From contig NW_002060969.1 in the NCBI RefSeq assembly GCF_000150275.1, positions 496,001-560,000 of the forward strand: a stretch of DNA of 64,000 nt, read 5' to 3'. Origin of the DNA: Trichoplax adhaerens (lineage: Eukaryota; Animalia; Placozoa). Below, piece after piece: positions 5,228 through 22,400 of this stretch (its first letter is position 1; each line of letters opens with the position of its first letter). Both the position numbers and the translations under genes were made by a program. Below the pieces are notes generated by a model, which did no database searches, had not been told where the DNA came from, and saw nothing but the letters and a program-made list of their open reading frames with translations.

Positions 5228-8200
5228 CTATTCTTGAGGACTAAAGTTCTTAAATAAAGATTTAGCTTCCTCTTGACTAATTAAATTACCACCCCAACGT
5301 AACTGATGTAGATTTTTAATGTTATTAATTATTAATTTTAATCCTCCTATGGTTATTTTGGTGTCACGAATATCTAATTCTCTCAAACGACAACTTTCGT
5401 GCTCTAATAGTATTTTGATATATTTCATTGCTTTGTTGCCTAATACATTATGACTGATATTTAAGTACTGCAAATTCTCTAACTGACCATGATCCCTGAC
5501 AAAATGATCAACGAGTCTTCTTATGCCAGATGCGCCCAAGCAATTTTCACTTAAATTTAAACTGTGTAATCCTTGACTAAGATTTTTAAGCCGGTCTGTA
5601 ATAAAATCTATTGCATCGTTTGTCAATTCACAGCCTTTTAAATCGCAGATTTTAGATTCCTGTATTTTCTGATTTCCTTCGCCATTAAATAAATGGCTGC
5701 ATTTAACAAAGCCTTTGATACTACTTATAAATTGATCATCGGATGTTTTTGTGTCGTCACTTTTATCGAAAGGTTGAGTGATTCTATACTCAGCGTTTGC
5801 TATAATCTCCAACAAATAAAGTTGATCATGAAATTTTTCGATTATTGTTAAAGCATTTTCTTTGTTAAGTTGATTCTTGAATAAGTTTATTGTACGAAGG
5901 TGTCGAAATTTCGTAGACTCTATCGCAGTCAATAGATAGAGAACCCCATCAATCGTAATATTGTTATAATCCAAGCCTACGTATCTTAATACCGGCATAA
6001 GATGTAAAACTTTTGCTAAAGGTTTTACATTCTTGTCTTGTAACTGATTCTCAACTAGATGTAGATCAGTTAAGTTCGAAAATCCATCAAGTTGAATTAA
6101 TTGGACCAATGGAGTAATATCACATGCAGAATTACTGAAAATCCAAGATAAATTTAAAACTTTAACACAATTTTTGGCATAAGATAAACAATCAATAACC
6201 GTCGATCGTTCGATTCCAAAGTTATCTAATGATTTTACCGCGAAATTGTCTTGACTTAATATTTCACAAAGGACTAGCAGGCCCTTTTCACCAAATGGAT
6301 TCCCACCTAAATGTAGTTCGTCTAATTTCGCGATGGCTACAGCAGGTATTAATTTATATAATATTGTGTCCGTAATATCGCACCAAGACATTCGAATCCC
6401 TCCTAAACTTTCGCCCATACTTGCTATTCCATCGGCAAACTGATCGATGTCATCTCCAGCTAAAGAATTTCCGATAATATTTAATTTGTCTATTTCCATC
6501 AACTTTCCCCTCATACATTTTCCTAATATATTAAATCCTTTTGCAGTCAATTTATTGCCTTTCAGATTTAATGACATTCGCATTTTGATCTTAATGTCAG
6601 CTAAAAGCTTGGGTAAAATATTCATTGTAGAGTCATCAATTTCACATTTGATTAGTTTTAGTGTGTTATCTGTGTCGGATAGTATTCTTCCACTAATTAT
6701 CGGAGATTTTAGAAGGGGTGCCAAAGCTTCGATACCAAGCATGCCGAGTGGATTATAACTTACGTTGAGACTAGAAATTTGACAATCAGGATCAATCATA
6801 GCGTTCACGTAAGCTATAATGCCTGCCTGACTAAATCTATTGTTTTCTAGGCGTAAAGAATGTAAGCAGTCATTACCTTGTAACCCCTCACATAAAGATA
6901 TGACCCCTTGATCACCCAGTCGGTTGGATCGTAAATCCAAGGTATATAAAGTGCGATTAACTTTTAACATTCTTCCGAACTCTCGTCCACCGTCAGACCC
7001 GATATTATTTCGTAAGAGTATCAAATTTCTAATTAAGAGATCTTTGTTATTGATAATGGCTTCAGCAATGGCAGTTGCAATAATATCACTGATACCTGCA
7101 TTTGTTAAGTCGATAGTAGTCAAGTTATTTTGGTTTTGAATGAGTAATTGGAGGTCTTCGTATGCAACATCGGGAATATGGTGGCCAATGGTAATTTTAA
7201 AAATTTTATCATTATCTTTTATAATGTGCAAAATATCTCTAATACCCTCCTGAGTTAGTTTCATTGTAGCTGGTAGATTAAGGGTTCGTATCATTTCATC
7301 TTCTTTATCCACGAACGCACTTACCAATAAATTAGCAGTATTAGTATCTATTCTTGCACATGAGATCCTCTTCACAAGCTCTCTTTTCGCCGGCAATCGC
7401 TTACCTATTTTCATTTTTTCAACCGCATTGTCTGTAAATTCAGAACTACCCTTCATAAACCCAGCACCCGAAAAATGCGAATCTTCGTATATATCCTTCT
7501 TTTCAGTTTCTGCCATTTCTTCAATCTTCTTCTGGCACGATTCTAGACTATCTTGAATACTAGCTATCTTAGCCTGTTGCTGACGATATAATTTCAATAG
7601 CTTTTCCAATGCTATGACTTTATCTGATTTCTGAGCTCGTACAATTTCAATTTCTTTCCTTTTCTTCTTGAGCTCTTGTTGTACCTCCTTCACATTATCA
7701 CTATGGACTGAATTATCTGCAATAGATTCTAGAATCTCGCTTAGCTGAAAAATCTTTTTTTCAAATTCGTCAATTTCACGGGTTGCGTCGTTAATACTTT
7801 TAATGAGGCTATTTCTTACTTTTTTTTGTTTTCTCATCTCCTCTTCCAATGCCTTAATCCTTGCTTCATATTCTTTAATGCGCTTTTTGACATTTCCTGT
7901 TGATCTTCGACCTTTAGCGTCAATCAATAATTTTTCAAGCCTCGACCAATTCATAAATGTGCTACATGTTAGCAACTTATTAGCTAGATCCGTTGATATG
8001 ATTGATATTGCTGTATATCTGTCCATGTTTTGGAAAAGCTCCTTCAAAGGATCGTCTGGGTGATGAATTATAATTTTTGCAGGAGCATTTTCGGTTAATT
8101 GTTGTAACAATTTATTCTTACTTTCAGTTATTAATCGATAATCATAGGTATAATCTCCTTGGGCATACAAGAAGATCGGTAAAATCCAGATAATGTCAGC

Positions 8201-8434
8201 AGTAGGGTCTCTCATAGCGTTGATTATATCGTCTACGCGATCACGCCATGAGTATAAGGATGATTCCAGATAACGCCGAAGGAGTTTCAAATATACTTTA
8301 TTGATGATCTGATTCCCAATCTTTAGTAAGAATCTTTCACTAGGTAAGTTAACTAATAAATTACTTACGCATTCGATAATTATTTGCGTATCGCATAGCA
8401 AAGGCAGCAAGATTCGAACGGTTTGAATCGTCAT
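5228..8434 (-). CDS. Intronless coiled-coil plus ribonuclease-inhibitor-type (NLRC3/RanGAP-like) leucine-rich repeat protein, ~1068 aa
   Basis: Uninterrupted ORF with an E/K-rich heptad region (ORF aa ~215-350) followed by many ~28-aa LRRs (LYTLDLRSNRLGDQGVISLCEGL, LHSLRLENNRFSQAG, LRYVGLDYNNITIDG, LQYLNISHNVLGNKA). Start placed at Met38 of the ORF (8434), because the upstream extension runs through CAGTA repeats. Confidence 0.85.
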   Translation of the reverse strand: MTIQTVRILLPLLCDTQIIIECVSNLLVNLPSERFLLKIGNQIINKVYLKLLRRYLESSLYSWRDRVDDIINAMRDPTADIIWILPIFLYAQGDYTYDYRLITESKNKLLQQLTENAPAKIIIHHPDDPLKELFQNMDRYTAISIISTDLANKLLTCSTFMNWSRLEKLLIDAKGRRSTGNVKKRIKEYEARIKALEEEMRKQKKVRNSLIKSINDATREIDEFEKKIFQLSEILESIADNSVHSDNVKEVQQELKKKRKEIEIVRAQKSDKVIALEKLLKLYRQQQAKIASIQDSLESCQKKIEEMAETEKKDIYEDSHFSGAGFMKGSSEFTDNAVEKMKIGKRLPAKRELVKRISCARIDTNTANLLVSAFVDKEDEMIRTLNLPATMKLTQEGIRDILHIIKDNDKIFKITIGHHIPDVAYEDLQLLIQNQNNLTTIDLTNAGISDIIATAIAEAIINNKDLLIRNLILLRNNIGSDGGREFGRMLKVNRTLYTLDLRSNRLGDQGVISLCEGLQGNDCLHSLRLENNRFSQAGIIAYVNAMIDPDCQISSLNVSYNPLGMLGIEALAPLLKSPIISGRILSDTDNTLKLIKCEIDDSTMNILPKLLADIKIKMRMSLNLKGNKLTAKGFNILGKCMRGKLMEIDKLNIIGNSLAGDDIDQFADGIASMGESLGGIRMSWCDITDTILYKLIPAVAIAKLDELHLGGNPFGEKGLLVLCEILSQDNFAVKSLDNFGIERSTVIDCLSYAKNCVKVLNLSWIFSNSACDITPLVQLIQLDGFSNLTDLHLVENQLQDKNVKPLAKVLHLMPVLRYVGLDYNNITIDGVLYLLTAIESTKFRHLRTINLFKNQLNKENALTIIEKFHDQLYLLEIIANAEYRITQPFDKSDDTKTSDDQFISSIKGFVKCSHLFNGEGNQKIQESKICDLKGCELTNDAIDFITDRLKNLSQGLHSLNLSENCLGASGIRRLVDHFVRDHGQLENLQYLNISHNVLGNKAMKYIKILLEHESCRLRELDIRDTKITIGGLKLIINNIKNLHQLRWGGNLISQEEAKSLFKNFSPQE

Positions 8435-10808
8435 GATTAGACATTCACTAATGTGTAATTTTTTAAGCGGATCAGTACGGCTGATTTTTTTACTACTTGT
8501 TGCAGTGTACAGTACAGTACTGTACGTGTATGAGTTAACATGCACTATGCACGCGTACTATCTAGTGCGCTACAATGCAGTAGTATACAATAATGAGTGG
8601 GTACAAAGTAATTAATCCGCTATTATCACCTTCACGACAGTACAGTGACCAATATTAATTCAAATTATTAATAAAATAAAATTTACAGTATATTTCTACT
8701 GTATACTTCTTATGTTACTTTTTACTTTTTATTTTGCTTTTACGTTATTGAAGGAACGTTGGGAAGTGTTGGTATACAGTACCGTACAGTGTACTGTACA
8801 GTGTATACCTGCTTTAGAGCACTTGAGAAGTAAAAAGCTCGTAAAGGAATCAATCAAGGGTGACTCTCGAAAGTTATGATAAAACGGCAGTTTCAACTCA
8901 GCATGAGCCCTTTCTCTCCGAACGTAATAGTTTATCTATTTGCGGCTAGTTAAGTTGAGGCAAAGTAGCTCAAATTAGACATTGTAATTGACAGTGAATA
9001 CTGCATTGCGCTTTACGCGTTTACCGCATGCAGCATACAGTCCTGAGATCATCATTATGGTCACAGGACTGTAGCATAACAATGATATTATTCATTGTAC
9101 TGTACAAGATACACTAATTGTACAATACTTGCAGTCCGCGACAGCATCGAGGAACCATCATAATCATGTATTTGCTTTGCCGGTTTAACCTTGATTAAGC
9201 TAATGCCCAAAATCAAATTGTACTCATCTTTGCCGTTTTATTTTCATTTATTGTTTTCTGATCTATTATTTTTGTATAAGTTTGGATATTTTCGATTTTT
9301 AAAATAATTCTCTTCAGCAAGTTTAATAATGAATGCATCTGTAGAGCCGTCAGCGAATATACACCTACAGTATACTTGACCATCTCCTTCTTCCGAGTAT
9401 GGTAGAAACAGGCGACATCGCCTGGTAGAAGTTGCTGATTGCCGTAGAGAAGTTGTACACTGAAGAGTAGTGTTCCAACAAAAATCTCGATTCGATTCGG
9501 TTCGAATTTCTCGAATCTAAAGAGTACTAGATAGTCGCTCGTTACACTGCTGTAGTGCACTGTATGTACATTATACATATATAATTTCCCTGACTAAGCA
9601 TTTTACTGAAAATATTATTAATAAAATAGCGAAATCCATGCAATATAGTGCAATTTTAAGTTAATAACAGCGTGACACACATGCAATCACATTAATATAA
9701 TTAATATAATTTGATGATTAATTGAAGGATTTTATTACGTAAGATAAGCGAGTGATACAATTCTACATCTGAAAATAACAATAGTATCAGTCAGTCATAA
9801 ACCGCGATATTTTAATGCCAAGTTAATTAGTTAGCCTCTTGAAAAAGCGAATATAGTAATAAGGGGCATTTGCTTAATTGTCAATGATTTTAGTAATAAA
9901 CCGAAACTTTTAAGTGAGAATACAAAAGTACGTGCGTACGATTATTATAATTAACTTAGTTGGCCATAATAATTCGGACTAAAATAGCTATTTCTTTATT
10001 TTAGGAACTGTAATATGCATGACACATAATTGCAGATATCATAGCCAATCGCGCCAGCGTCTAGTACTATATAACATACATGTATCATTACAATAGTTTT
10101 ATTAAAGTTTAACTTGAAGTTATCCTTATTATTATTATTATTATTATAAACATTCCTGAGGTTGCCGGAAGTAGAATAAAAAGCAAACCCTTAAATATCA
10201 GACAATAGGAGCTATATCACTGCGATCCTATTTACTAATCTTCTCGGCATGTACCCAAAAATATTACAGAAATATAATATAGTGCTCGTATTTACTCGTA
10301 TTAACAGTAGGATTTTTGTTTCATTTCTTACATAGGAAATTATCAATTTCGTGTCAGTTTCGACTCTCAATTGATGAAAGACTGACAGTTAAACACAGTA
10401 ACTAGTGAAGGTAGATATTTAGTAACATGCATTTGTAGAGCAACGCACGCGTAAAACAATGTTTTAACTAACGACCAACGCTAAGTGCTGCGATTCGTGA
10501 GGGCAAATCAAAAACTACTAAAGAGTAAAGACTACTTTTCTTTAGTACTGTCTGGTACGGCATTTGAATATCTCTAATAGGAGTAGCAAGTAGATACTGG
10601 TATAACGATTTCATACTGAGTAATTCGTAATAAGTTTGCTTTAATATATATGAAAATAAAATCAATGAACAGCAATAGTAATAATAAATTGACATATGAT
10701 TCTCATCTAGCAGTAATTCAGTTTATATACAATCTATGTAATATTTTTAAGGACTGGCACTGCAAATTATAAATACTAGTATTAGTGCCCTACACTTCAT
10801 ATTAAATG

Positions 10809-13364
10809 TTAAAATGATGTATCATTGGCAGTTCTCAATTCCGAGATGCCATTCATCTCTTCAAAAAATTCATCAAGGCCATTAATTGGCTTCAATCCCG
10901 GTGCTATCTTACGACATAAAGGGCAGCGCCTACAATTATTAGCTTTCATCTCCTTAACACAGGAATCGCAACCAATAATTTGACCACAACAAGTTGCGAG
11001 AATAGCCGGTGGTTTAATTACATCTTCACAAATACAGCACGTAAATGTTTGCTTTGATCTATTCACAAAATTTTCGTATACTGGCCTTTTTTTGTTCATA
11101 AACGATTCGCAAGATTTAACATTAGATGCTGTACCCTCATCCTCATCCAGAAATATTAAAGGTATTTCAGAAGAAAATTCGACAATCATAATTTCAAAAA
11201 GAGAACGAAGGTCGCTTCCCGGCTATATTTTTAAAGTTGATTGGAACAGTCAAGTGTTGGGGAAACACAAAACCATAATTAATTAAAAAGTAATTGATAA
11301 GTAATGATTTTTACAAACCCATTTCCAATCTTCAAGATAGGATAAAGAAATCCGACAGTTAGAGTCAACCATACCAGTAGTTAAAAGTTCTTGGTTTTCC
11401 TCTGGGCTGATAAAACAAATCGGAGCAGATAATGGAAAGTTTTTTCGAAGATACAATGCGATTGGTACAGAGTGACGAACTCTTCGAAACTCAGCAGGAA
11501 TTACTAGAAAGAGGATTAAATAAAGCGCGTTAAGATAGTGTCATACGCCGGCGTGGTCTATGATCCGAATTTAGGATTAACGTAGAACTGTATGATCGGT
11601 AATCACAAACTAATTGCATTGTCTTATGCACAGGTGTATTTACGGGCTGTATGTACGCGGCAAAGGTGGCCATTAACATTTAAATCGTTACCATAAACTA
11701 TTAACCGCAAACAATAATCTTTTAATTATGTAGACTGCATAATATACGCAATTTGACACTTTTATCTAAAGAACTAATCGAGAAAAATAATTGCAGTAAA
11801 TTTCAAATTTCAATTATAGTACATGTAGTGATGCACCCATATTTGATTATACAGATAGCTATATTTGATATAGTTAGGTTGCTTTGAATAGATATTGCCG
11901 TCAAGAAGAGTAGTGACATAAGTAGAATGATTTAGATTTTCTACTTAGATTGTAGAAAATAATGATGTACTATTAGAGAAAAGTATTTTGTTTGATGACT
12001 TATGTCTGATTGTAGATTAATCAAGTTGTCATAAATGGATTTAATGAAACTGCAGAGATGAGCTCACAGAGGAGAAGAGACCTCACTTCCCTTTGAGCTT
12101 GGAATACTTTAGATTTTAGACTAGATTCTTGTAGTAATTAATTATTGCTCTACTATTCCTAAAACCTTGTAAGAAAAGCCTTTTAGAAAATACCATTGAC
12201 TAAGATAGCTATTGTGAGACGTAACTATTACAGTACATTAGGTAATTAACTATTCAAAAGACGTAAGATGAGGGTAAACTGTAGTAGATCAAAGAGATTG
12301 ACATTACTATAAAATTTTAGATAAAAGACTTAAAATAAAATTACTATATTATATTTATACACACTATTATATGGATTACTGAAACTGAACTTTGAAATTG
12401 GACAGTAAACTAGCAATTGCCTACGTCACTATACTATACTAATCTACAGCGCACACTACGAGAAGATAGTTCATGACTAACTAAAACCAACATTAGGATG
12501 TAACCTGAACGAGAATACCAATGGTACCTACCGGAACTATTTATGGGAACTGCTCCATTTATTGTTAATAACTGCTCAGCCCTTCCATCCGTGAAGACTG
12601 CAGATAAGATATCAATTAAGTAATCAATAGCCATTTTTAAAATTTTCATTGCGATACGTGAACAATAAAATTTACCTATTAAGATTGATTAATTGATTGA
12701 GTTTGTAATATTAATAAATCTTACCATGTTCTGATATCTTGATATCGAAAGAATTAAATAGCTTAACCGCATTTATTATTTCAGTAATAATTTCTGATCG
12801 ATAGCTGTACTACAGTGATTTAAAATACGAATGCAATATTACATGTTTGCAGGGTTATCATCAATTAATTACTCGTATATACACGTGTAAATTATCTCAA
12901 TTAATTCTTGCATGCTGTATTTTGGAACTTATGTATCATATAGTACTGTAATGACGTTAATATTAATATTATGACAAATCGTATTACAGAATGTAGATAG
13001 AACCGTGAAAAAAACTTAAATATGTACTCGTATATATTATACGTGTACAGTATACAGTATTTACAGTGTGACTGTGGCACTAAATTAGTCGAGTTAATAC
13101 AATCCACAGCCGAAATATAAAACTACAGTGTCATTTCGAGTTGAAACATTTCACTTTTTCACATTTGATTAACATACTAATTAGTATATTACCTAAATAA
13201 TAAAATCCATTTTACCGCAGTTTTACATACGTATACAGTACAGTACTGCAGATTTTAGTCTAAACTTTCGCATACAGTGTTCAATAACACTGACAGTCAC
13301 GGTTTTAGAGATAACAGTAGTGTACCTCGATCAGACATTTCGAAAGATGTTCTTGCAGCTCCAT
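10809..13364 (-). CDS. TSG101-type UEV domain fused to a C-terminal RING finger (~262 aa); exons 13364-13326, 12809-12725, 12597-12532, 11503-11319, 11222-10809
   Basis: All junctions are GT-AG and frame-compatible. Translation: MELQEHLSKCLIE|YSYRSEIITEIINAVKLFNSFDIKISEHV|FTDGRAEQLLTINGAVPINSSV|IPAEFRRVRHSVPIALYLRKNFPLSAPICFISPEENQELLTTGMVDSNCRISLSYLEDWKW|PGSDLRSLFEIMIVEFSSEIPLIF...CCICEDVIKPPAILATCCGQIIGCDSC...CPLCR. It aligns by eye with the TSG101 UEV (YKYRD, VFNDG, GTIP, PPICFV, YLHEWKHPQSDL). Exon 1 is the least certain. Confidence 0.85.
11978..12232 (-). repeat. Dispersed ~250 bp repeat, copy B, inside intron 3 of the UEV-RING gene
   Basis: Reverse-complement similarity to 3085-3337. 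Confidence 0.75.
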
Positions 13365-14509: not shown

Positions 14510-17500
14510 ATGGCTGATTCTAACGTTCATAGCGATGACAAGGTACAGTATATTTAAATTCTAGAATGATTATTAATTATCATTAACAATTATTTATCGG
14601 GAAGTTTAATTTAAGTTAATAGTAAATATTTCGCTATTCTTACAGATTGTATTTGAACAAGATGGAGTTTACATCCATACCGCCGTACCTTCTAACGAAG
14701 ATATTTGCGGTAAACTACGAATCGTTGACAAGGTCTGTTTACCAATCCTAAATCCTTAATACGTGTAGTTTAATGTGCTTTGGTAATGCAGCAAAGCCCT
14801 ACGAGTTGATTGCAATTTTCCGGAGCGGAGTCGGAGTAGAAAATTAGCAAATGACAGAACACTACTGTAGTGTACAGTATTCACGAACATTTAATTTTTC
14901 ATCTGCTTTCTGTATTGTGCATAAAAAAGTACAAATGTAACTGCAATACGCGCTATAGAAGGATTTGCTGATTTCGCCGCTTATATATTTCTTGAATTAT
15001 TCCATTACAAATGTAATAGAAATGATTCTATTGAATATACTATTTATACCAACCACCCTCCAGTATTATGTAACTCTTCCCGGTAGAATGTTTTAGATGG
15101 CTGTACGAACATAATCATTCATCATTCTGACTTTATATACAGTAAATACGAGTACGTGTGTATACTATAAATTTCATAGCCAGTATACGAACCTCCCTGA
15201 ACTGGTGCTTTTGTACTTTTACGTGGGCCTTTCGTTAGACTTGAAGCTGCTGTTCATAAATTTTTAGTAAACACTATTCTTTATGTTCTTTATATTGCTA
15301 CAATATCTAATGCTATTTAATTGTGTTATAGGATGGAAAATGTTACATTGCTTGGAAGCCAAATCAAATCGCCGATACTAGCCTAACCGCTACTTCAGTG
15401 TCTGGTTATCAAGAAGACGATCATGATTGGGCTTTCATTAATCCCTTCGAAGAAGCCATTTCAACAGCCTTCGGTGTGATCATATATATTCATTACTATG
15501 CGTGCATAGATAAATTTCTATCCGTAGTATTTAAATTATGTTATCATCGCTATAAAATATCCTTCGTTCGAAATCCATTTGCTTATTGCATTATTAAATT
15601 TATCAGCTGATGACTATTTTGCGTTTACTTAATTGATCCAATACTATTGATTGGGTTAGCACACCATCGAAGAATAAGGACATAAGATACTTTGCTAGTC
15701 GTAACATTACATTTAGAATACCTTAGTAGTTCATCTTTTGTTCTGTAGGTAATGATGGAAGCGATTGCGAAAAACTTATCCAAAGAGGATATAAAATGCA
15801 TATACGGCTATCTTCTTTGCATTCTATCAAGACTTCTGATTCAAATATGGGTTGGAAGTACTTAATATTTGTTCTCCAAGATGGAGCTGTTTTGCCCGCT
15901 CTCCATTTTCATAAAGGTGGCAGTAAAGAAGTATTACAGTTCTTAGAACGCTTTGTTTGGTTATCGATGTAAGTTTTACTATCTGTATGCCATGAGTATA
16001 AAGGTTCGTTCTCTTACACTTCGGTTATCGTATTATTTTGCATTTTAAATTTTCTGTAAATAGATCTCCAAGTAATCCCAACTGTTTACAAGTCATTGAT
16101 AACCGTAATGCCCTACATCATTCTTTAACTCAATTACAAATTTTTAATGAAGCGCCTTCAATGTCTGTATGTACTGTCGATAACGGCTAAAGAAAAATAG
16201 TAAAATTGTTACACTGCTAGTATGATAGTCATTTAAACAGAAACGCTGATCACTATTGCAGAGATTTTTGAAGGACGCTTACGTGGAAACAATGGTTGGC
16301 TTCTCTCGTGTGACTAAATTAATGTGGGATGCCTTTGGATCTGCAAATATAAACGAAATTGCTAATAATGAAAAAAAAATTGAAATTGATTGTACTCCGG
16401 GGATCGCCGTTAGTAGTTATGAACCTGGATTTGAATTCGTTACCTGTGTAAGACTTTCAAGTTTTACAACTGTTTGAAATGGTATCAAAAGTATAGGAAT
16501 TTTTTATTTCAACCTGTTTATGCGTCCATTATATTTTAGAACAAATTGGGGGATGACCCCGCAGTCTCTCGCTTAGAACCCTTAACAGATGTAGAATTTA
16601 CATCATTTTTTGACTCGCGAGGTTGTCTCGTTGAAATTGATAAGTTTTTGGAACGTGCTTTTCGCGGGGTGAGTAATTTGGGCAATTATTTCCCCTTTTT
16701 CATACCTATAATTTTGGCTATTGGAGTAATCAGTCACTTTTGGGTCTAAAAATAGGGTTTAGGCCATGGTATTAGACAAGAAGCTTGGAAGTATTTACTA
16801 AATTACTATAGCTTTGACTTTAACAACGAAATGAAACTTGATCGAAAGCACCAAAAGACGTCTGTACTACAGTTTTCTTCATTTCGCAGGCACGTACAGT
16901 TTAACATATTTTAATCTACATTTGTTAGAGGTGAATATCACTCAATTAAACAACAATGGCAGTTAATTACACCAACTCAGGAGAAGAATTTTAAAGAATT
17001 TCGTCTCCGTAAAAGTACCGTAGGTAAAATATATTGGTTTTGCTCTAAATGTTCTTACTATTATACTGATACCACTATTGCATATGCGTTATTCTTCTTT
17101 CGTCTAAAATCATTATACAGCAGAAAATAGTATTCAACGTTTAATGACTTCACTGACATATTACAGAAAAGGATGTACTACGAACAGATAGGACGCACGA
17201 GTTTTATAAGGGTGAAGATAATCCCAATGTGAAGAAATTATACAACATACTATTGACGTACAGTTTTTATAACTTTGATTTAGGTCTGCATATCAGAACT
17301 TGTTTAAAGCATATAAATTTTACACTCTTATGTATGATGCTATAAATACTTTTTCTTATTCAAGTGCAATTCTTTTCTTTGTTAGGATATGTTCAAGGAA
17401 TGAGTGATTTAGTCTCTCCTATATTATTTGTGATGGAAAATGAAGCGGACACATTTTGGTGTTTTGTCGGCTTGATGGAAAGAATCGTGAGGATAAGAAA

Positions 17501-18295
17501 TATTTATTTTTCCTTTCAGGTTTTATACCGACGTAATAACAGTAGTTTCCGTTACTGGTTTAAAAAGGGTTCGAACTTTGATATCGATCAGAAAGAAATA
17601 CAGAAACAACTGAGTCTACTTTACGGACTAATAAGATTCGTAGATCCGGAATTTTGTAACTACTTAGGTAATCACATATTTAAATAATACGTTACTACTT
17701 TTTTAGCCAGTCGTAAGGAAACAGTTGTAAAATGAGACGCACTTGGATTCGAATTACAGATACTCACGATTCCAATAACCTCTACTTCTGTTTCCGTTGG
17801 CTTTTGGTCTTATTTAAAAGAGAATTCACGTTCCAAGAAACTATGTTATTGTGGGAGGTAGGTTGAAGAATGATCTTCAAACCGAATTCATAGAAGACAT
17901 CTCATTTCTGCTTGTTATACATAGGTCTTGTGGAGTCAAAGATTATCACAGCATTTTTTACTATTTATCTGCTTGGCCATAATTATGAACCAGAAGCAAG
18001 TCATTGTTTCTAATAATTACGGATTTAACGAAATCATAAAAGTAGGGAGTAGCAACCGACTTTAAGCCTCTTCTGTTAGTTAGCTCAGTTATTTCCTATC
18101 AAAATTTTGATCATTTAGAGAATTTTCTGAGTTTTCATTTCTTCTTGTTAGCATGTGAATGAACTAGCTTTGAAACTAAACTTGGAAGACATCCTTAAGA
18201 AAGCTGAGACAATGTTTATTCAAGTTAAGAGATGCAAAACTATGCCTAGCAATATTAAAGAACTCACTGAGACTCCTAATTCCTTTGGCCCGTAA
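14510..18295 (+). CDS. TBC1D15: TBC1 domain family member 15/17 (Rab7 GAP-type), multi-exon
   Basis: Exons encode VFEQDGVYIH, LPALHFHKGG, ETMVGFSRVT, EPGFEFV, EKDVLRTDR (arginine finger), GYVQGMSDL (glutamine finger), NLYFCFRWLLVLFKREF and GFNEIIKHVNEL. ATG at 14510, TAA at 18293-18295. May represent the common ancestor of TBC1D15 and TBC1D17. Confidence 0.92.
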
Positions 18296-19472: not shown

Positions 19473-22400
19473 CTAGGATTTGCTTATTTTACTATGAATC
19501 CATTCAAGATATTCATCGACTCTAGTATAAACTCCGTAATAATTTGGTTTAGCGCAGCCTAAGAAAGATAAACATGATTAAAAACTTATATGGCAAAGTA
19601 AGCGCTATACTAGCACTCCGGTCTAATAACTCGTGAAAATACTATTTTAATGTAGCGTTAGTAAGGACTGGAATAAAGTTTGTATCATAGAAATATAGTG
19701 ACTTTTTACCAATAAGGTAAAATGCGGGAAATCGTTGAGCAGAATGGTTTATTTTTATATCTTACCACGGCCCCAGCTAACAACACCGCCTAAAACTTCA
19801 TCCCCTTGATGGTTCTTGCAGACTAGTGGGCCACCACTGTCACCTTGACAGCCGTCTTTACCTCCTTTGGCATATCCAGCACACATCATCTTAGAAGCAA
19901 TTTCGCCGCCATAAGAAATGAGAGCATTACATTTTTCATTACTAATGACTGGAACATCTGTCTCACGTAGCCCTTCTTCAGCTAGCATACCATCATCGCT
20001 TGTTCCCCAACCACTAACTGAACACATTTTGCCTAGAAAGTGATCATTTTGGGCAGCTAGCTGAATCAATTTGACTTTGTCATTTAGCTCAGCTGGATGT
20101 GCAAGTTTAAAAATGGCAATATCGTTTTCTTTTGTTTTTCTCGAGTACTTCTCATGTTTGATTCTATCATATTCACAATAAAGTTTAACGATAAGTAGTT
20201 ACTTAAAAGAGTAAACACGCCAGTAGAATCGACTAGTAATTATTGCTATATCTTCTAGCAGTACTATTTCCCTGCCAATTATAACGAATTCTAAATTTCT
20301 AAAATTTATAATACGTGTCTTAATTTTAAATCAATAATACACGTATATGACAATTTCACTTTCGTTAAATTTATTAAGCACGGTAAGAGGTCAGCATATT
20401 AAATCATAACTAAAAATAGATCAGGCTCAACCAAAATTCTCATCATTTATGGTACCCTACTGTACTGTACCTTCCAGGAGAATACAGTACAGTGATATCT
20501 AATATGATCATACAGTGTAATTGTGTGAATTTACTGTCTTGTACTGTACGTACAGACTGTAATGTTAATTAGTAGTCACTACAATGTGTATTACCGATCA
20601 GTAGATCTACAATACTTATTATTGGGTACAAGACTCATTTTAAGATTATACGTTGATTCCATGGCCTTCTCTTCACGTCCTTAATTTCTCTGCCACGAGG
20701 CTAACCTGTCTCTGTGTCGTCTACTAACTCTAACTGTAAATAAATGCTATCTACGCTTAATCATCCTGCCTTCATCTCCAACAAGAATGTCTAACACTAC
20801 ACACACTACTGTTTTTATAGCCTTGAATTACTTTACTACTCATACACCACATGTTATTTTACAGTACTTCAATTCAGTCTTTTTCTAATTATGATTAAGA
20901 TATACAATCGGTATAAACATAGGAGGTTCAATAGAGAATTGTGAGTAAAATTTTTAAAATATCATTTTTACCTCTTTTCAATTTCAATCTTTTGTTGACT
21001 TTCCTCCTCCTTAAGAATGTTGTGGGCCCCTAAAATGGCCTCAAATTTCTCATTTGGAATTCGATCGACGACACAATGTGCAGCTGTAATGACATACTGC
21101 TTAGAAATTAAAGAACCGCCGCAAAAGAACTCTCCTGATCTGACTAACGCAACTTGGTATGGTCGACTATGAGGTATACTTTCAATTCCACCAATTATTC
21201 TGTCTTCTTCCAAGTCATCAATGAATCGGTCGTCATTTACCGCTATTCAAGCCATACGGGATTTGATCAAAATAGATATCAGATGAAGTGAATTATTAAA
21301 TAGATAGAAATGAATGCGCATATACCGTACTATAGTAGTACCGGTTTATGATTACGAGTCCATTCTGACAGTATAAATCGATGTTAATTGTAATACGTGT
21401 TCAAAATAAACGAATTAATGCCGTAATAATAGCAAAATTCTTTTTGTAAGAAATTTTTTAGCTTAGTCTAAAACTACTTTAAAGATAGTGCAAATTACTA
21501 AAATATCTACCTCGATCACGAAATAGGCTTGCTCCTAATTTAACAGTATCCCTTAGATTTCGATTTGGCGCTTAATAAAGAAAAAAGTAATAAAATATAA
21601 ATTAGAAAAGATCTCTTGAATTTCGTTATATTAATAAATATGATAGAAAGACTTCTGTGTATAAAGGAGTGAAAATTAAATCCATGACTACATAGTTGCT
21701 TCATTAATAGTGCAGTAACTAGCTAACTCCCGACCTTTTGCCTTTGTACAGTAGCTAAAATCAGTAGCGGTGAGTAAATAATATAAATTAGCATCAAAAA
21801 TCGTTTCAGAATAATGTAACCGTAAAATACGAAAATCATAATTTACAGCTAGGTATATCGATCATCTACGTTGTTACCTATAAACAATAATTGAACATTT
21901 TATAATGCATTAAAATTAGTAATAAGATACCCATTATGGTGAAGTGGTAGACATACGGGTAATATATATATTGCCTCTTCATACAAAGATAATTAAGTAA
22001 AACAATTCTTCATACAACCGTATCTTATCCTATATTACTGTATATGCAATTTAATGAGTAGGACTTCGCTAATAATTTCAGAAAATGTTTCATTAACAAA
22101 TTATTACTTGATGCAAATACGTTGCTTGCAGATTAACTGATCGTAAGATCACACACAGTACAGTACTTTGATAAAAACATTTATCGAATATGATTCAAAT
22201 TACTTAGTTAAAAGTTTCAGCCGAATTTCGTTACCTCCTTGACTTAAAATGAAATTCACTATGATGGTACTAATTTAAACGAATCGCTTTGTAGTATTCA
22301 GTACTCGCTCACTCACAATACTGTATACCTGTAGGGCTTATTTTCATATTTATTCTTATTAGTCATTGACTAATGTCATTTACTGTATTAACATACTCCT

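Follow-up and report, generated by a model that had tools for sequence, protein, structure and literature searches.

A TSG101 paralogue of Trichoplax adhaerens with a UEV domain and a C-terminal RING module: a candidate UEV-targeted ubiquitin ligase

[quoted passage not shown] RING ubiquitin ligases can be joined to the TSG101 UEV in trans, as is the case for LRSAM1/TAL and MGRN1, where a P(S/T)AP motif of the ligase docks on TSG101. Here we report a gene of the placozoan Trichoplax adhaerens that differs from this arrangement in that a UEV of the same type and a RING module are part of one polypeptide. The gene, called the UEV-RING gene in the following, was analyzed in a stretch of 64,000 nucleotides (contig NW_002060969.1 of the NCBI RefSeq assembly GCF_000150275.1, positions 496,001 to 560,000 of the forward strand), which we refer to as the window.

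The closest described system is TSG101 (Vps23) itself. It shares with the UEV-RING protein a full-length UEV with the extra N-terminal helix, the β-hairpin tongue and the lack of an active-site cysteine, and the intron positions of the Trichoplax TSG101 gene are identical. Unlike the UEV-RING protein it carries a proline-rich region, a coiled-coil stalk, a steadiness box and the PTAP groove, and it has no C-terminal RING. In UEVLD (UEV3), another paralogue of TSG101, the UEV was retained and the ESCRT-I part swapped for a different domain (PMC12513931), in this case a lactate/malate dehydrogenase-like domain instead of a RING. As UEVLD is listed as a gnathostome product of domain shuffling (PMC11788884), its origin is independent of that of the UEV-RING gene. 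A link between the two was considered and rejected, since Pfam finds a UEV and a RING and no dehydrogenase domain in the Trichoplax protein, and the listing of UEVLD is gnathostome-specific.

We propose, with a probability of roughly 0.6, that the locus is a real Trichoplax gene, an old TSG101 paralogue of which the UEV alone is present and is followed by a C-terminal RING E3 module, and that its product would act as a UEV-targeted ligase. Such a protein would mean that the UEV has been reused, either as the targeting module of a ligase or as a built-in pseudo-E2. With its 262 residues it could provide a compact system for the role of a UEV beside an E3 and for the uncoupling of the ubiquitin site from the peptide site.

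The gene lies on the minus strand and consists of five exons with GT..AG borders and intron phases 0-1-1-0 (Table 1). Its coding sequence of 789 nt (262 codons) specifies a protein of 262 amino acids, which is organized into a complete TSG101-type UEV, a variable acidic linker and a helix-flanked RING with eight cysteines. An earlier inspection of the window by a model, which had the letters and their open reading frames only (the sequence-only reading), had predicted five in-frame exons, and their lengths, borders and phases all proved to be as claimed. The last UEV helix and the RING are located within the single unbroken exon 5, so that the fusion of both is independent of splicing.

Table 1. 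Features of the UEV-RING gene. Positions refer to the window, residues to the database protein RDD41158.1; pLDDT, predicted local distance difference test; JGI, Joint Genome Institute; a slash marks the splice junction.
Feature	Position	Strand	Length (nt)	Residues	Remarks
Exon 1	13326..13364	-	39	1-13	ATG at 13364; codes for MELQEHLSKCLIE; phase-0 donor GT 13325-13324; position matches the 45-nt exon 1 of canonical TSG101
Exon 2	12725..12809	-	85	14-41	N-terminal helices of the UEV; phase 1 at end
Exon 3	12532..12597	-	66	43-63	ubiquitin-binding β-hairpin "tongue" (VFTDG...)
Exon 4	11319..11503	-	185	65-125	UEV core; 5' end 21 nt longer than canonical exon 4 (164 nt)
Exon 5	10809..11222	-	414	126-262	includes TAA 10811-10809; a single open frame codes for the last UEV helix, the linker and the RING module
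UEV C-terminal helix (PGSDLRSLFEIMIVEFSSEIPLIFLD)	11145..11222	-			aligns with human TSG101 120-141
Linker	11085..11144	-			acidic, poorly conserved; pLDDT 55-60
RING module	10833..11084	-			N-flanking helix, eight-Cys core (10908-11045), C-flanking helix with GLDEF motif
Alternative intron 3	11481..12528	-			in frame; JGI partial model TRIADDRAFT_8036; donor tag/gtacca after 12528, acceptor ..cgaag/A before 11481

The five exon translations are found as exact and ordered substrings in RDD41158.1, a 262-residue MAKER model from Trichoplax sp. H2, in which both split codons are read as valine. The protein is thus identical in T. adhaerens (H1) and in strain H2, and the candidate new ligase of the sequence-only reading is not a new sequence: it was already public in GenBank, where it is listed as "Tumor susceptibility gene 101 protein". 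The model stems from an evidence-based MAKER run with Trinity transcripts, and the H1 and H2 genomes are 99.1% identical (PMC6057997); the H2 copy therefore tells little about conservation. RDD41158.1 is independent support for the exon chain, short of a proof of transcription. All full-length analyses described here were made on this database protein, while the exons of the window were searched singly.

The public T. adhaerens model at the locus, TRIADDRAFT_8036, which was found by a word search with exon 4, is a partial sequence of 103 residues that covers UEV only; it starts inside intron 2 and ends where the homology to TSG101 ceases. RDD41158.1 sits in a 90% cluster that is represented by this fragment, and for that reason an exhaustive HMMER search with exon 5 missed the full-length protein. 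Because fragments can mask full-length members in this way, the absence of UEV-RING proteins from representative libraries means little, and further ones may be hidden likewise behind partial representatives.

To place the gene within the genome, the whole 105.6-Mb assembly was searched in six frames with Pfam, which yielded two UEV loci only. The second locus (C1388:198.7-199.1 kb) is found on the opposite strand of the same contig, at a distance of about 308 kb. It belongs to a canonical TSG101 gene (C1388:198.7-200.4 kb), in which the UEV is followed by a proline-rich stretch and a coiled coil in the same exon; two further exons (C1388:200113-200429) code for the steadiness box (Vps23_core, PF09454), which was found at this locus alone in the genome-wide search. 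The UEV-RING gene has neither the proline-rich linker nor the coiled-coil stalk, as in exon 5 the UEV helix is connected to the RING by an acidic linker of 20 residues, and the protein ends 32 residues beyond the last RING cysteine. The expectation that a separate canonical TSG101 would exist in the genome and the claim that the proline-rich, coiled-coil and steadiness-box parts are absent from the fusion are both borne out by these results.

The canonical gene has exons of 45, 85, 66 and 164 nt, and its four introns are found at the same codon positions and in the same phases as those of the UEV-RING gene. This is in agreement with the TSG101/UEVLD-like gene structure noted by the sequence-only reading, including the exons of 85 and 66 nt, and with the duplication at the DNA level that it had deduced: since the introns were retained, an origin by retroposition was rejected. 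The two Trichoplax UEVs are approximately 32% identical, which does not exceed the identity that each of them has with human TSG101 (about 35%); this indicates that the duplication is old or that the copy evolved fast. The UEV-RING gene is thus an intron-retaining TSG101 paralogue, most likely an old one, without the parts for ESCRT-I assembly. RDD41158.1 is not the TSG101 orthologue, which is the canonical gene, and its GenBank name is misleading, as the protein has no ESCRT-I parts, a replaced groove and a C-terminal RING. Both public entries, the fragment TRIADDRAFT_8036 and the misnamed RDD41158.1, need correction.

That the UEV is complete, as had been claimed, is supported by Pfam, where RDD41158.1 matches positions 2-121 of the 121 positions of the UEV profile PF05743 with 83.6 bits (cut-off 27; E 1.3e-23). 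Residues 5-147 match residues 6-141 of the human TSG101 UEV (E 1.4e-24) with an identity of 35% (47/136, counted on the HMMER alignment). Exon 4 alone is recognized as UEV (E 4e-13, 49.7 bits) and finds the human TSG101 UEV in the Protein Data Bank (E 9e-10). On their own, exon 2, exon 3 and the initial 30 residues of exon 5 had no match in the same database. The homology of these short exons rests on an in-register ungapped shuffle test, in which exons 2, 3 and 4 and the start of exon 5 (23 residues) were compared with the matching exons of canonical TSG101, and each of them scored better than 20,000 out of 20,000 shuffled sequences.

We then considered the two binding sites of the domain. 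In the HMMER alignment to human TSG101 the equivalents of the ubiquitin contacts V43, F44, D46, G47 and F88 are retained, and N45 is replaced by T. The P(S/T)AP groove is changed at Y68 (to H), N69 (S), T92 (E), M95 (Q), F142 (I), S143 (F) and R144 (L), whereas the canonical Trichoplax paralogue retains Y63, Y68, N69 and M95. The overall pattern put forward by the sequence-only reading, with ubiquitin contacts kept and the peptide pocket altered, is therefore confirmed, and so are its individual assignments for V43, D46, F88, N45, Y68 and M95. Its assignment of Y63 to serine depends on the alignment: the exon-wise alignment gives serine and the HMMER alignment phenylalanine. The position of the E2 active site (human Y110) is a serine, and no catalytic cysteine is present there.

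Two side observations concern the same residues. The β-tongue of the canonical Trichoplax TSG101 reads T-Y-N-D-G, compared to V-F-N-D-G in human; among the five ubiquitin contacts there are two at which the human sequence is better matched by the UEV-RING copy than by the canonical one. A cysteine (SNCRIS) occurs at residue 113 (window positions 11370-11372, minus strand), which corresponds to G107 of human TSG101; it is located three residues before the vestigial active site, at the conserved glycine of the HPN...G.xC motif of E2 enzymes.

A further difference from TSG101 is found between exons 3 and 4, where the junction of the H2 model leads to an insert of seven residues. Under either alignment this insert would fall within the S2-S3 loop, which forms a wall of the PTAP groove. 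The canonical acceptor has its counterpart before 11482, where AA now stands in place of AG; the H2 MAKER model uses the next in-frame AG upstream, which follows a good pyrimidine tract. This suggests a shift of the acceptor by which 21 nt became part of exon 4. In the JGI model the donor lies 4 nt and the acceptor 22 nt downstream of those in the H2 model. Both junctions are in frame, and the JGI version would lead to PINSS-GR-VRHS, with one additional residue in place of seven. The seven-residue insertion described by the sequence-only reading thus holds for the H2 junction and shrinks to one residue with the alternative.

The RING module belongs to a family with the consensus P..L......TF.C.IC...P.PP.....CC..I.GC..C(11)CPLCR(12)GLD.F. 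Its eight cysteines are conserved in 69-71 out of 71 relatives, no histidine is among the conserved positions, and an adjacent CC pair presumably provides ligands 3 and 4. Also largely conserved are the E2-contact isoleucine (Ile64 in exon-5 numbering, in C-x-I-C), present in 64, the E2-contact proline (Pro101), present in 68, and the linchpin arginine (Arg104, both in C-P-L-C-R), present in 61 of the 71 relatives. AlphaFold2, run with an alignment of exon 5, predicts residues 50-130 of this exon, including flanking helices, with a pLDDT of 96-98. All top matches of this model in Foldseek are RING E3 ligases (RNF8, RING1B, TRIM37, TRIM69, TRIM21, BRCA1, RAD18; probability 1.0), and the root-mean-square deviation from TRIM37 and RING1B is 1.7-2.0 Å over approximately 80 residues.

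An HMMER search with exon 5 against 1.84 billion representative sequences found a single close match (P0001, 64% identical) and, below it, 275 RING-only relatives with E values of 1e-11 and weaker. Among the best 150 relatives of the module none was found to contain a UEV. The named relatives are uncharacterised sponge proteins (Corticium XP_062511056.1 and Amphimedon XP_019859142.1), which share the module including both flanks (E 1e-11 to 1e-5). Small eight-Cys relatives from sponges and elsewhere differ from the UEV-RING protein by being stand-alone, tandem or equipped with other N-termini, and they are uncharacterised. A search of the Trichoplax genome for paralogues of the module found none, the second match being Cbl. 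A capture of the RING, which the sequence-only reading had assumed, appears plausible, as small RING proteins of the same family, which are uncharacterised, are known from sponges. As a side observation, some relatives (P0002, P0014 and P0003, including Corticium candelabrum XP_062511056.1) have two eight-Cys RINGs in tandem, preceded by a long N-terminal region without a Pfam match, and several other relatives share an N-terminal motif FWKVGSRK[IL][YF].

Conservation could be followed in two more distant open reading frames (ORFs), P0153 from ENA and P0001 from Logan, which are 61-64% identical to exon 5 and in each of which one frame spans the last helix of the UEV together with the RING. 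A word-based search with RDD41158.1 found P0153 only. We infer that both come from other placozoan lineages. In the comparison with P0153 the identity is 20/22 residues for the last UEV helix, 9/13 for the N-flanking helix, 38/46 for the RING core and 13/23 for the C-flank, compared to 3/20 in the linker, which also contains a 15-residue indel. Conserved domains with a free linker in between are the hallmark of a functional protein with two domains. A metagenome scan by protein patterns led to no confirmed relative. The sole metagenome match to a degenerate DNA pattern for CCGQIIGCD (QFCD01000810.1) was rejected as chance, as it is located on a high-GC bacterial contig in a frame that overlaps other ORFs.

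This conservation also bears on the idea that the protein is an antiviral decoy-ligase in the manner of TRIMCyp, in which the copy of a domain hijacked by viruses, coupled to a RING, would trap and ubiquitinate viral proteins with late domains. The domain logic fits, and the pocket has diverged markedly in the UEV-RING copy while the canonical paralogue keeps Y63, Y68, N69 and M95; an ORF of 1105 codons rich in leucine-rich repeats (LRRs) is located 2.3 kb downstream. At the end of the UEV, however, distant lineages agree in 91% of the residues, a pattern that does not fit an arms-race surface, the neighbouring LRR gene is weak context, and we know of no placozoan virus that uses PTAP. The idea is without specific support, and we consider it very improbable.

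In helix-flanked dimeric RING E3 ligases (RNF8, TRIM37/69/21, RING1B-BMI1, BRCA1-BARD1, RAD18) the cross-brace fold is accompanied by an N- and a C-terminal helix, through which the dimer interface is made. The RING of the UEV-RING protein resembles them with a template modelling (TM) score of up to 0.8 on the target at 16-30% sequence identity, and differs in that they use a histidine ligand where it has a cysteine and are combined with other targeting domains. Two copies of residues 165-262 were modelled as a homodimer, which reached an ipSAE (interaction prediction score from aligned errors) of 0.69, compared to 0.00 for the best control. Among proteins solved as pairs of one chain this mark was attained by 21 out of 30, and among those solved as single chains by 0 out of 23. 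At least 97% of the contacts agree between the runs, the pLDDT of the partner is at least 80, and the predicted interface is formed by both flanking helices together with residues 200-207.

According to the mechanism that we propose, the helix-flanked RING would dimerise and then recruit and activate E2~ubiquitin; the conserved isoleucine, proline and linchpin arginine are consistent with this. The UEV would be the targeting module, and its ubiquitin binding probably persists via the β-hairpin tongue and the F88 lip. As the P(S/T)AP groove is rewritten, the UEV would read another peptide or none. Proteins that bear a ubiquitin mark or the UEV's own peptide ligand could be the substrates, which would be ubiquitinated or have their ubiquitin extended. 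This would take place outside of ESCRT-I, because the protein is unable to join the stalk or the headpiece of the complex.

Several points weigh against this reading. With regard to the gene, its junctions and its expression are predicted from gene models, for MAKER protein homology alone can suffice to promote such a model, and the seven-residue insert hinges on which of the two in-frame junctions between exons 3 and 4 is used. With regard to the domains, the full-length AlphaFold2 model, which was made without an alignment for the UEV, gives this domain a pLDDT of 35-50, and the RING (residues 186-229 of RDD41158.1) reaches 19-22 bits with zf-RING_2 of Pfam (21.6 for exon 5 alone), which is below the cut-off of 27.3. 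The missing histidine and the unusual CC pair make the zinc geometry and the activity of the RING uncertain. The result for the dimer may reflect the memory of the model for solved RING dimers.

On the side of the gene these points lead to the question whether the locus could be a duplicate, silent or in decay, that was put together by gene finders on the basis of homology. The JGI model is a homology-only fragment, and the locus is unmentioned in the literature searched. On the other hand, the frame has remained open for 262 codons at a divergence of about 68% from the paralogue, for which we calculate a chance probability of approximately 4e-9 (stop rate of 7.1% per codon in the window). All eight splice-site dinucleotides are intact, the guanine-cytosine content is 37% in the exons compared to 30% in the introns, and the conservation in the distant ORFs is specific for the domains. 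A silent duplicate would be a most improbable explanation for these observations.

On the side of the domains, the protein could be a non-catalytic competitor of TSG101, a short UEV protein that withdraws ubiquitinated cargo or ligands of the UEV from ESCRT-I by titration and uses its RING-like finger for dimerisation or as a scaffold. Isolated fragments of the TSG101 UEV are dominant negatives, every part for ESCRT-I assembly is absent, and the deviating ligands and the low Pfam score of the RING would fit a finger of this kind. A protein with a rewritten PTAP groove would compete poorly for the peptide ligands of TSG101, however, and the conservation of the E2-contact isoleucine and proline and of the linchpin arginine across the RING family is unexpected in a mere scaffold, so that we regard this explanation as quite unlikely.

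The sequence-only reading had named TSG101 and UEVLD as the animal proteins with this type of UEV. This does not hold in the ESM Atlas, which contains the exact UEV-RING sequence. There we found a cluster from Euglenozoa (247 residues, 77 members; PF13920 in 100% and PF05743 in 99%), a UEV+RING cluster from Mollusca (235 residues, 51 members, both Pfam families in 100%) and, by structure, a 730-residue UEV+IBR cluster from Chordata. The mollusc and euglenozoan clusters are the nearest by language-model features (0.87; 175-176 shared) and were found again by predicted structure (TM about 0.5). Such similarity scores are leads only; the Pfam content of the clusters is independent of the query, from which it follows that UEV+RING proteins, so far uncharacterised, exist in other phyla and that the architecture is not unique to Trichoplax. 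The clusters resemble the UEV-RING protein in the pair of Pfam families and in length, and this comparison was made at the level of clusters. Next nearest by features (0.77-0.80) are RWD+RING clusters. Like the UEV-RING protein, RNF25 has a non-catalytic domain of the UBC fold followed by a RING; this domain is an RWD and not a UEV, and the likeness is one of architecture.

The UEV in these fusions could have another function than targeting. It has been reported that the TSG101 UEV mimics E2 enzymes at the E2-E3 interface and protects diverse E3 ligases (PMC11725782). Correspondingly, the UEV of the Trichoplax protein might be a pseudo-E2 that is wired to its own E3 and docks on the E2 face of the RING, in cis or across the dimer, to gate or protect the ligase without recognizing a substrate. 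The Atlas shows a UEV fused to two types of E3 (RING and IBR/RBR, the RING-between-RING type), with RNF25-like RWD-RING proteins next nearest, and the linker of approximately 20-35 residues is flexible and variable in length. Against this stands that the UEV has low confidence in the full-length model and that the conserved ubiquitin contacts fit the role of a reader equally well. We regard a pseudo-E2 of this kind as unlikely and prefer the UEV-targeted ligase.

The clusters further hint at a family that is worth a survey. In a wider and rather doubtful proposal, UEV-E3 fusions would form an old and overlooked class of ligases in which a TSG101-type pseudo-E2 is hard-wired to an E3, as UEV-RING in placozoans, molluscs and euglenozoans and as UEV-RBR in chordates, with Trichoplax as a slow-evolving witness of an early split. 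If this were true, the UEV could read the ubiquitin of a substrate for chain extension (E4-like, akin to Mms2 with Ubc13) or gate the E2 site, and the Trichoplax gene with its ancestral introns would mark a split from TSG101 early in the history of eukaryotes or animals.

Whether UEV-RING proteins are an already described and widespread family has two answers: clusters occur in other phyla, yet no published description was found. The terms "UEV-RING" and "UEV RING" had no occurrence in the literature searched, which also contained no description of such a fusion and no mention of the accessions of the Trichoplax protein. For Trichoplax together with TSG101, nothing relevant was found in this literature, the supplementary data of the placozoan cell atlas included.

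Finally, we note three neighbours of the gene in the window. Directly downstream and on the same strand, the ORF mentioned above (5228-8545, minus strand, 1105 residues) is a single open frame with a lysine- and glutamate-rich stretch that has the appearance of a coiled coil, followed by many LRRs of the ribonuclease inhibitor (RNI) type (Pfam LRR_6, E 2e-21). It looks like an intron-poor gene for an LRR scaffold or for a protein similar to the nucleotide-binding LRR (NLR) receptors. Upstream of the start of the UEV-RING gene, exons of a TBC/RabGAP gene (PF00566, E 6e-13) are located at 15398-17687 on the plus strand. Further on, at 19755-20069 on the minus strand, a trypsin-like serine protease is represented by one exon (PF00089, E 2.5e-24).

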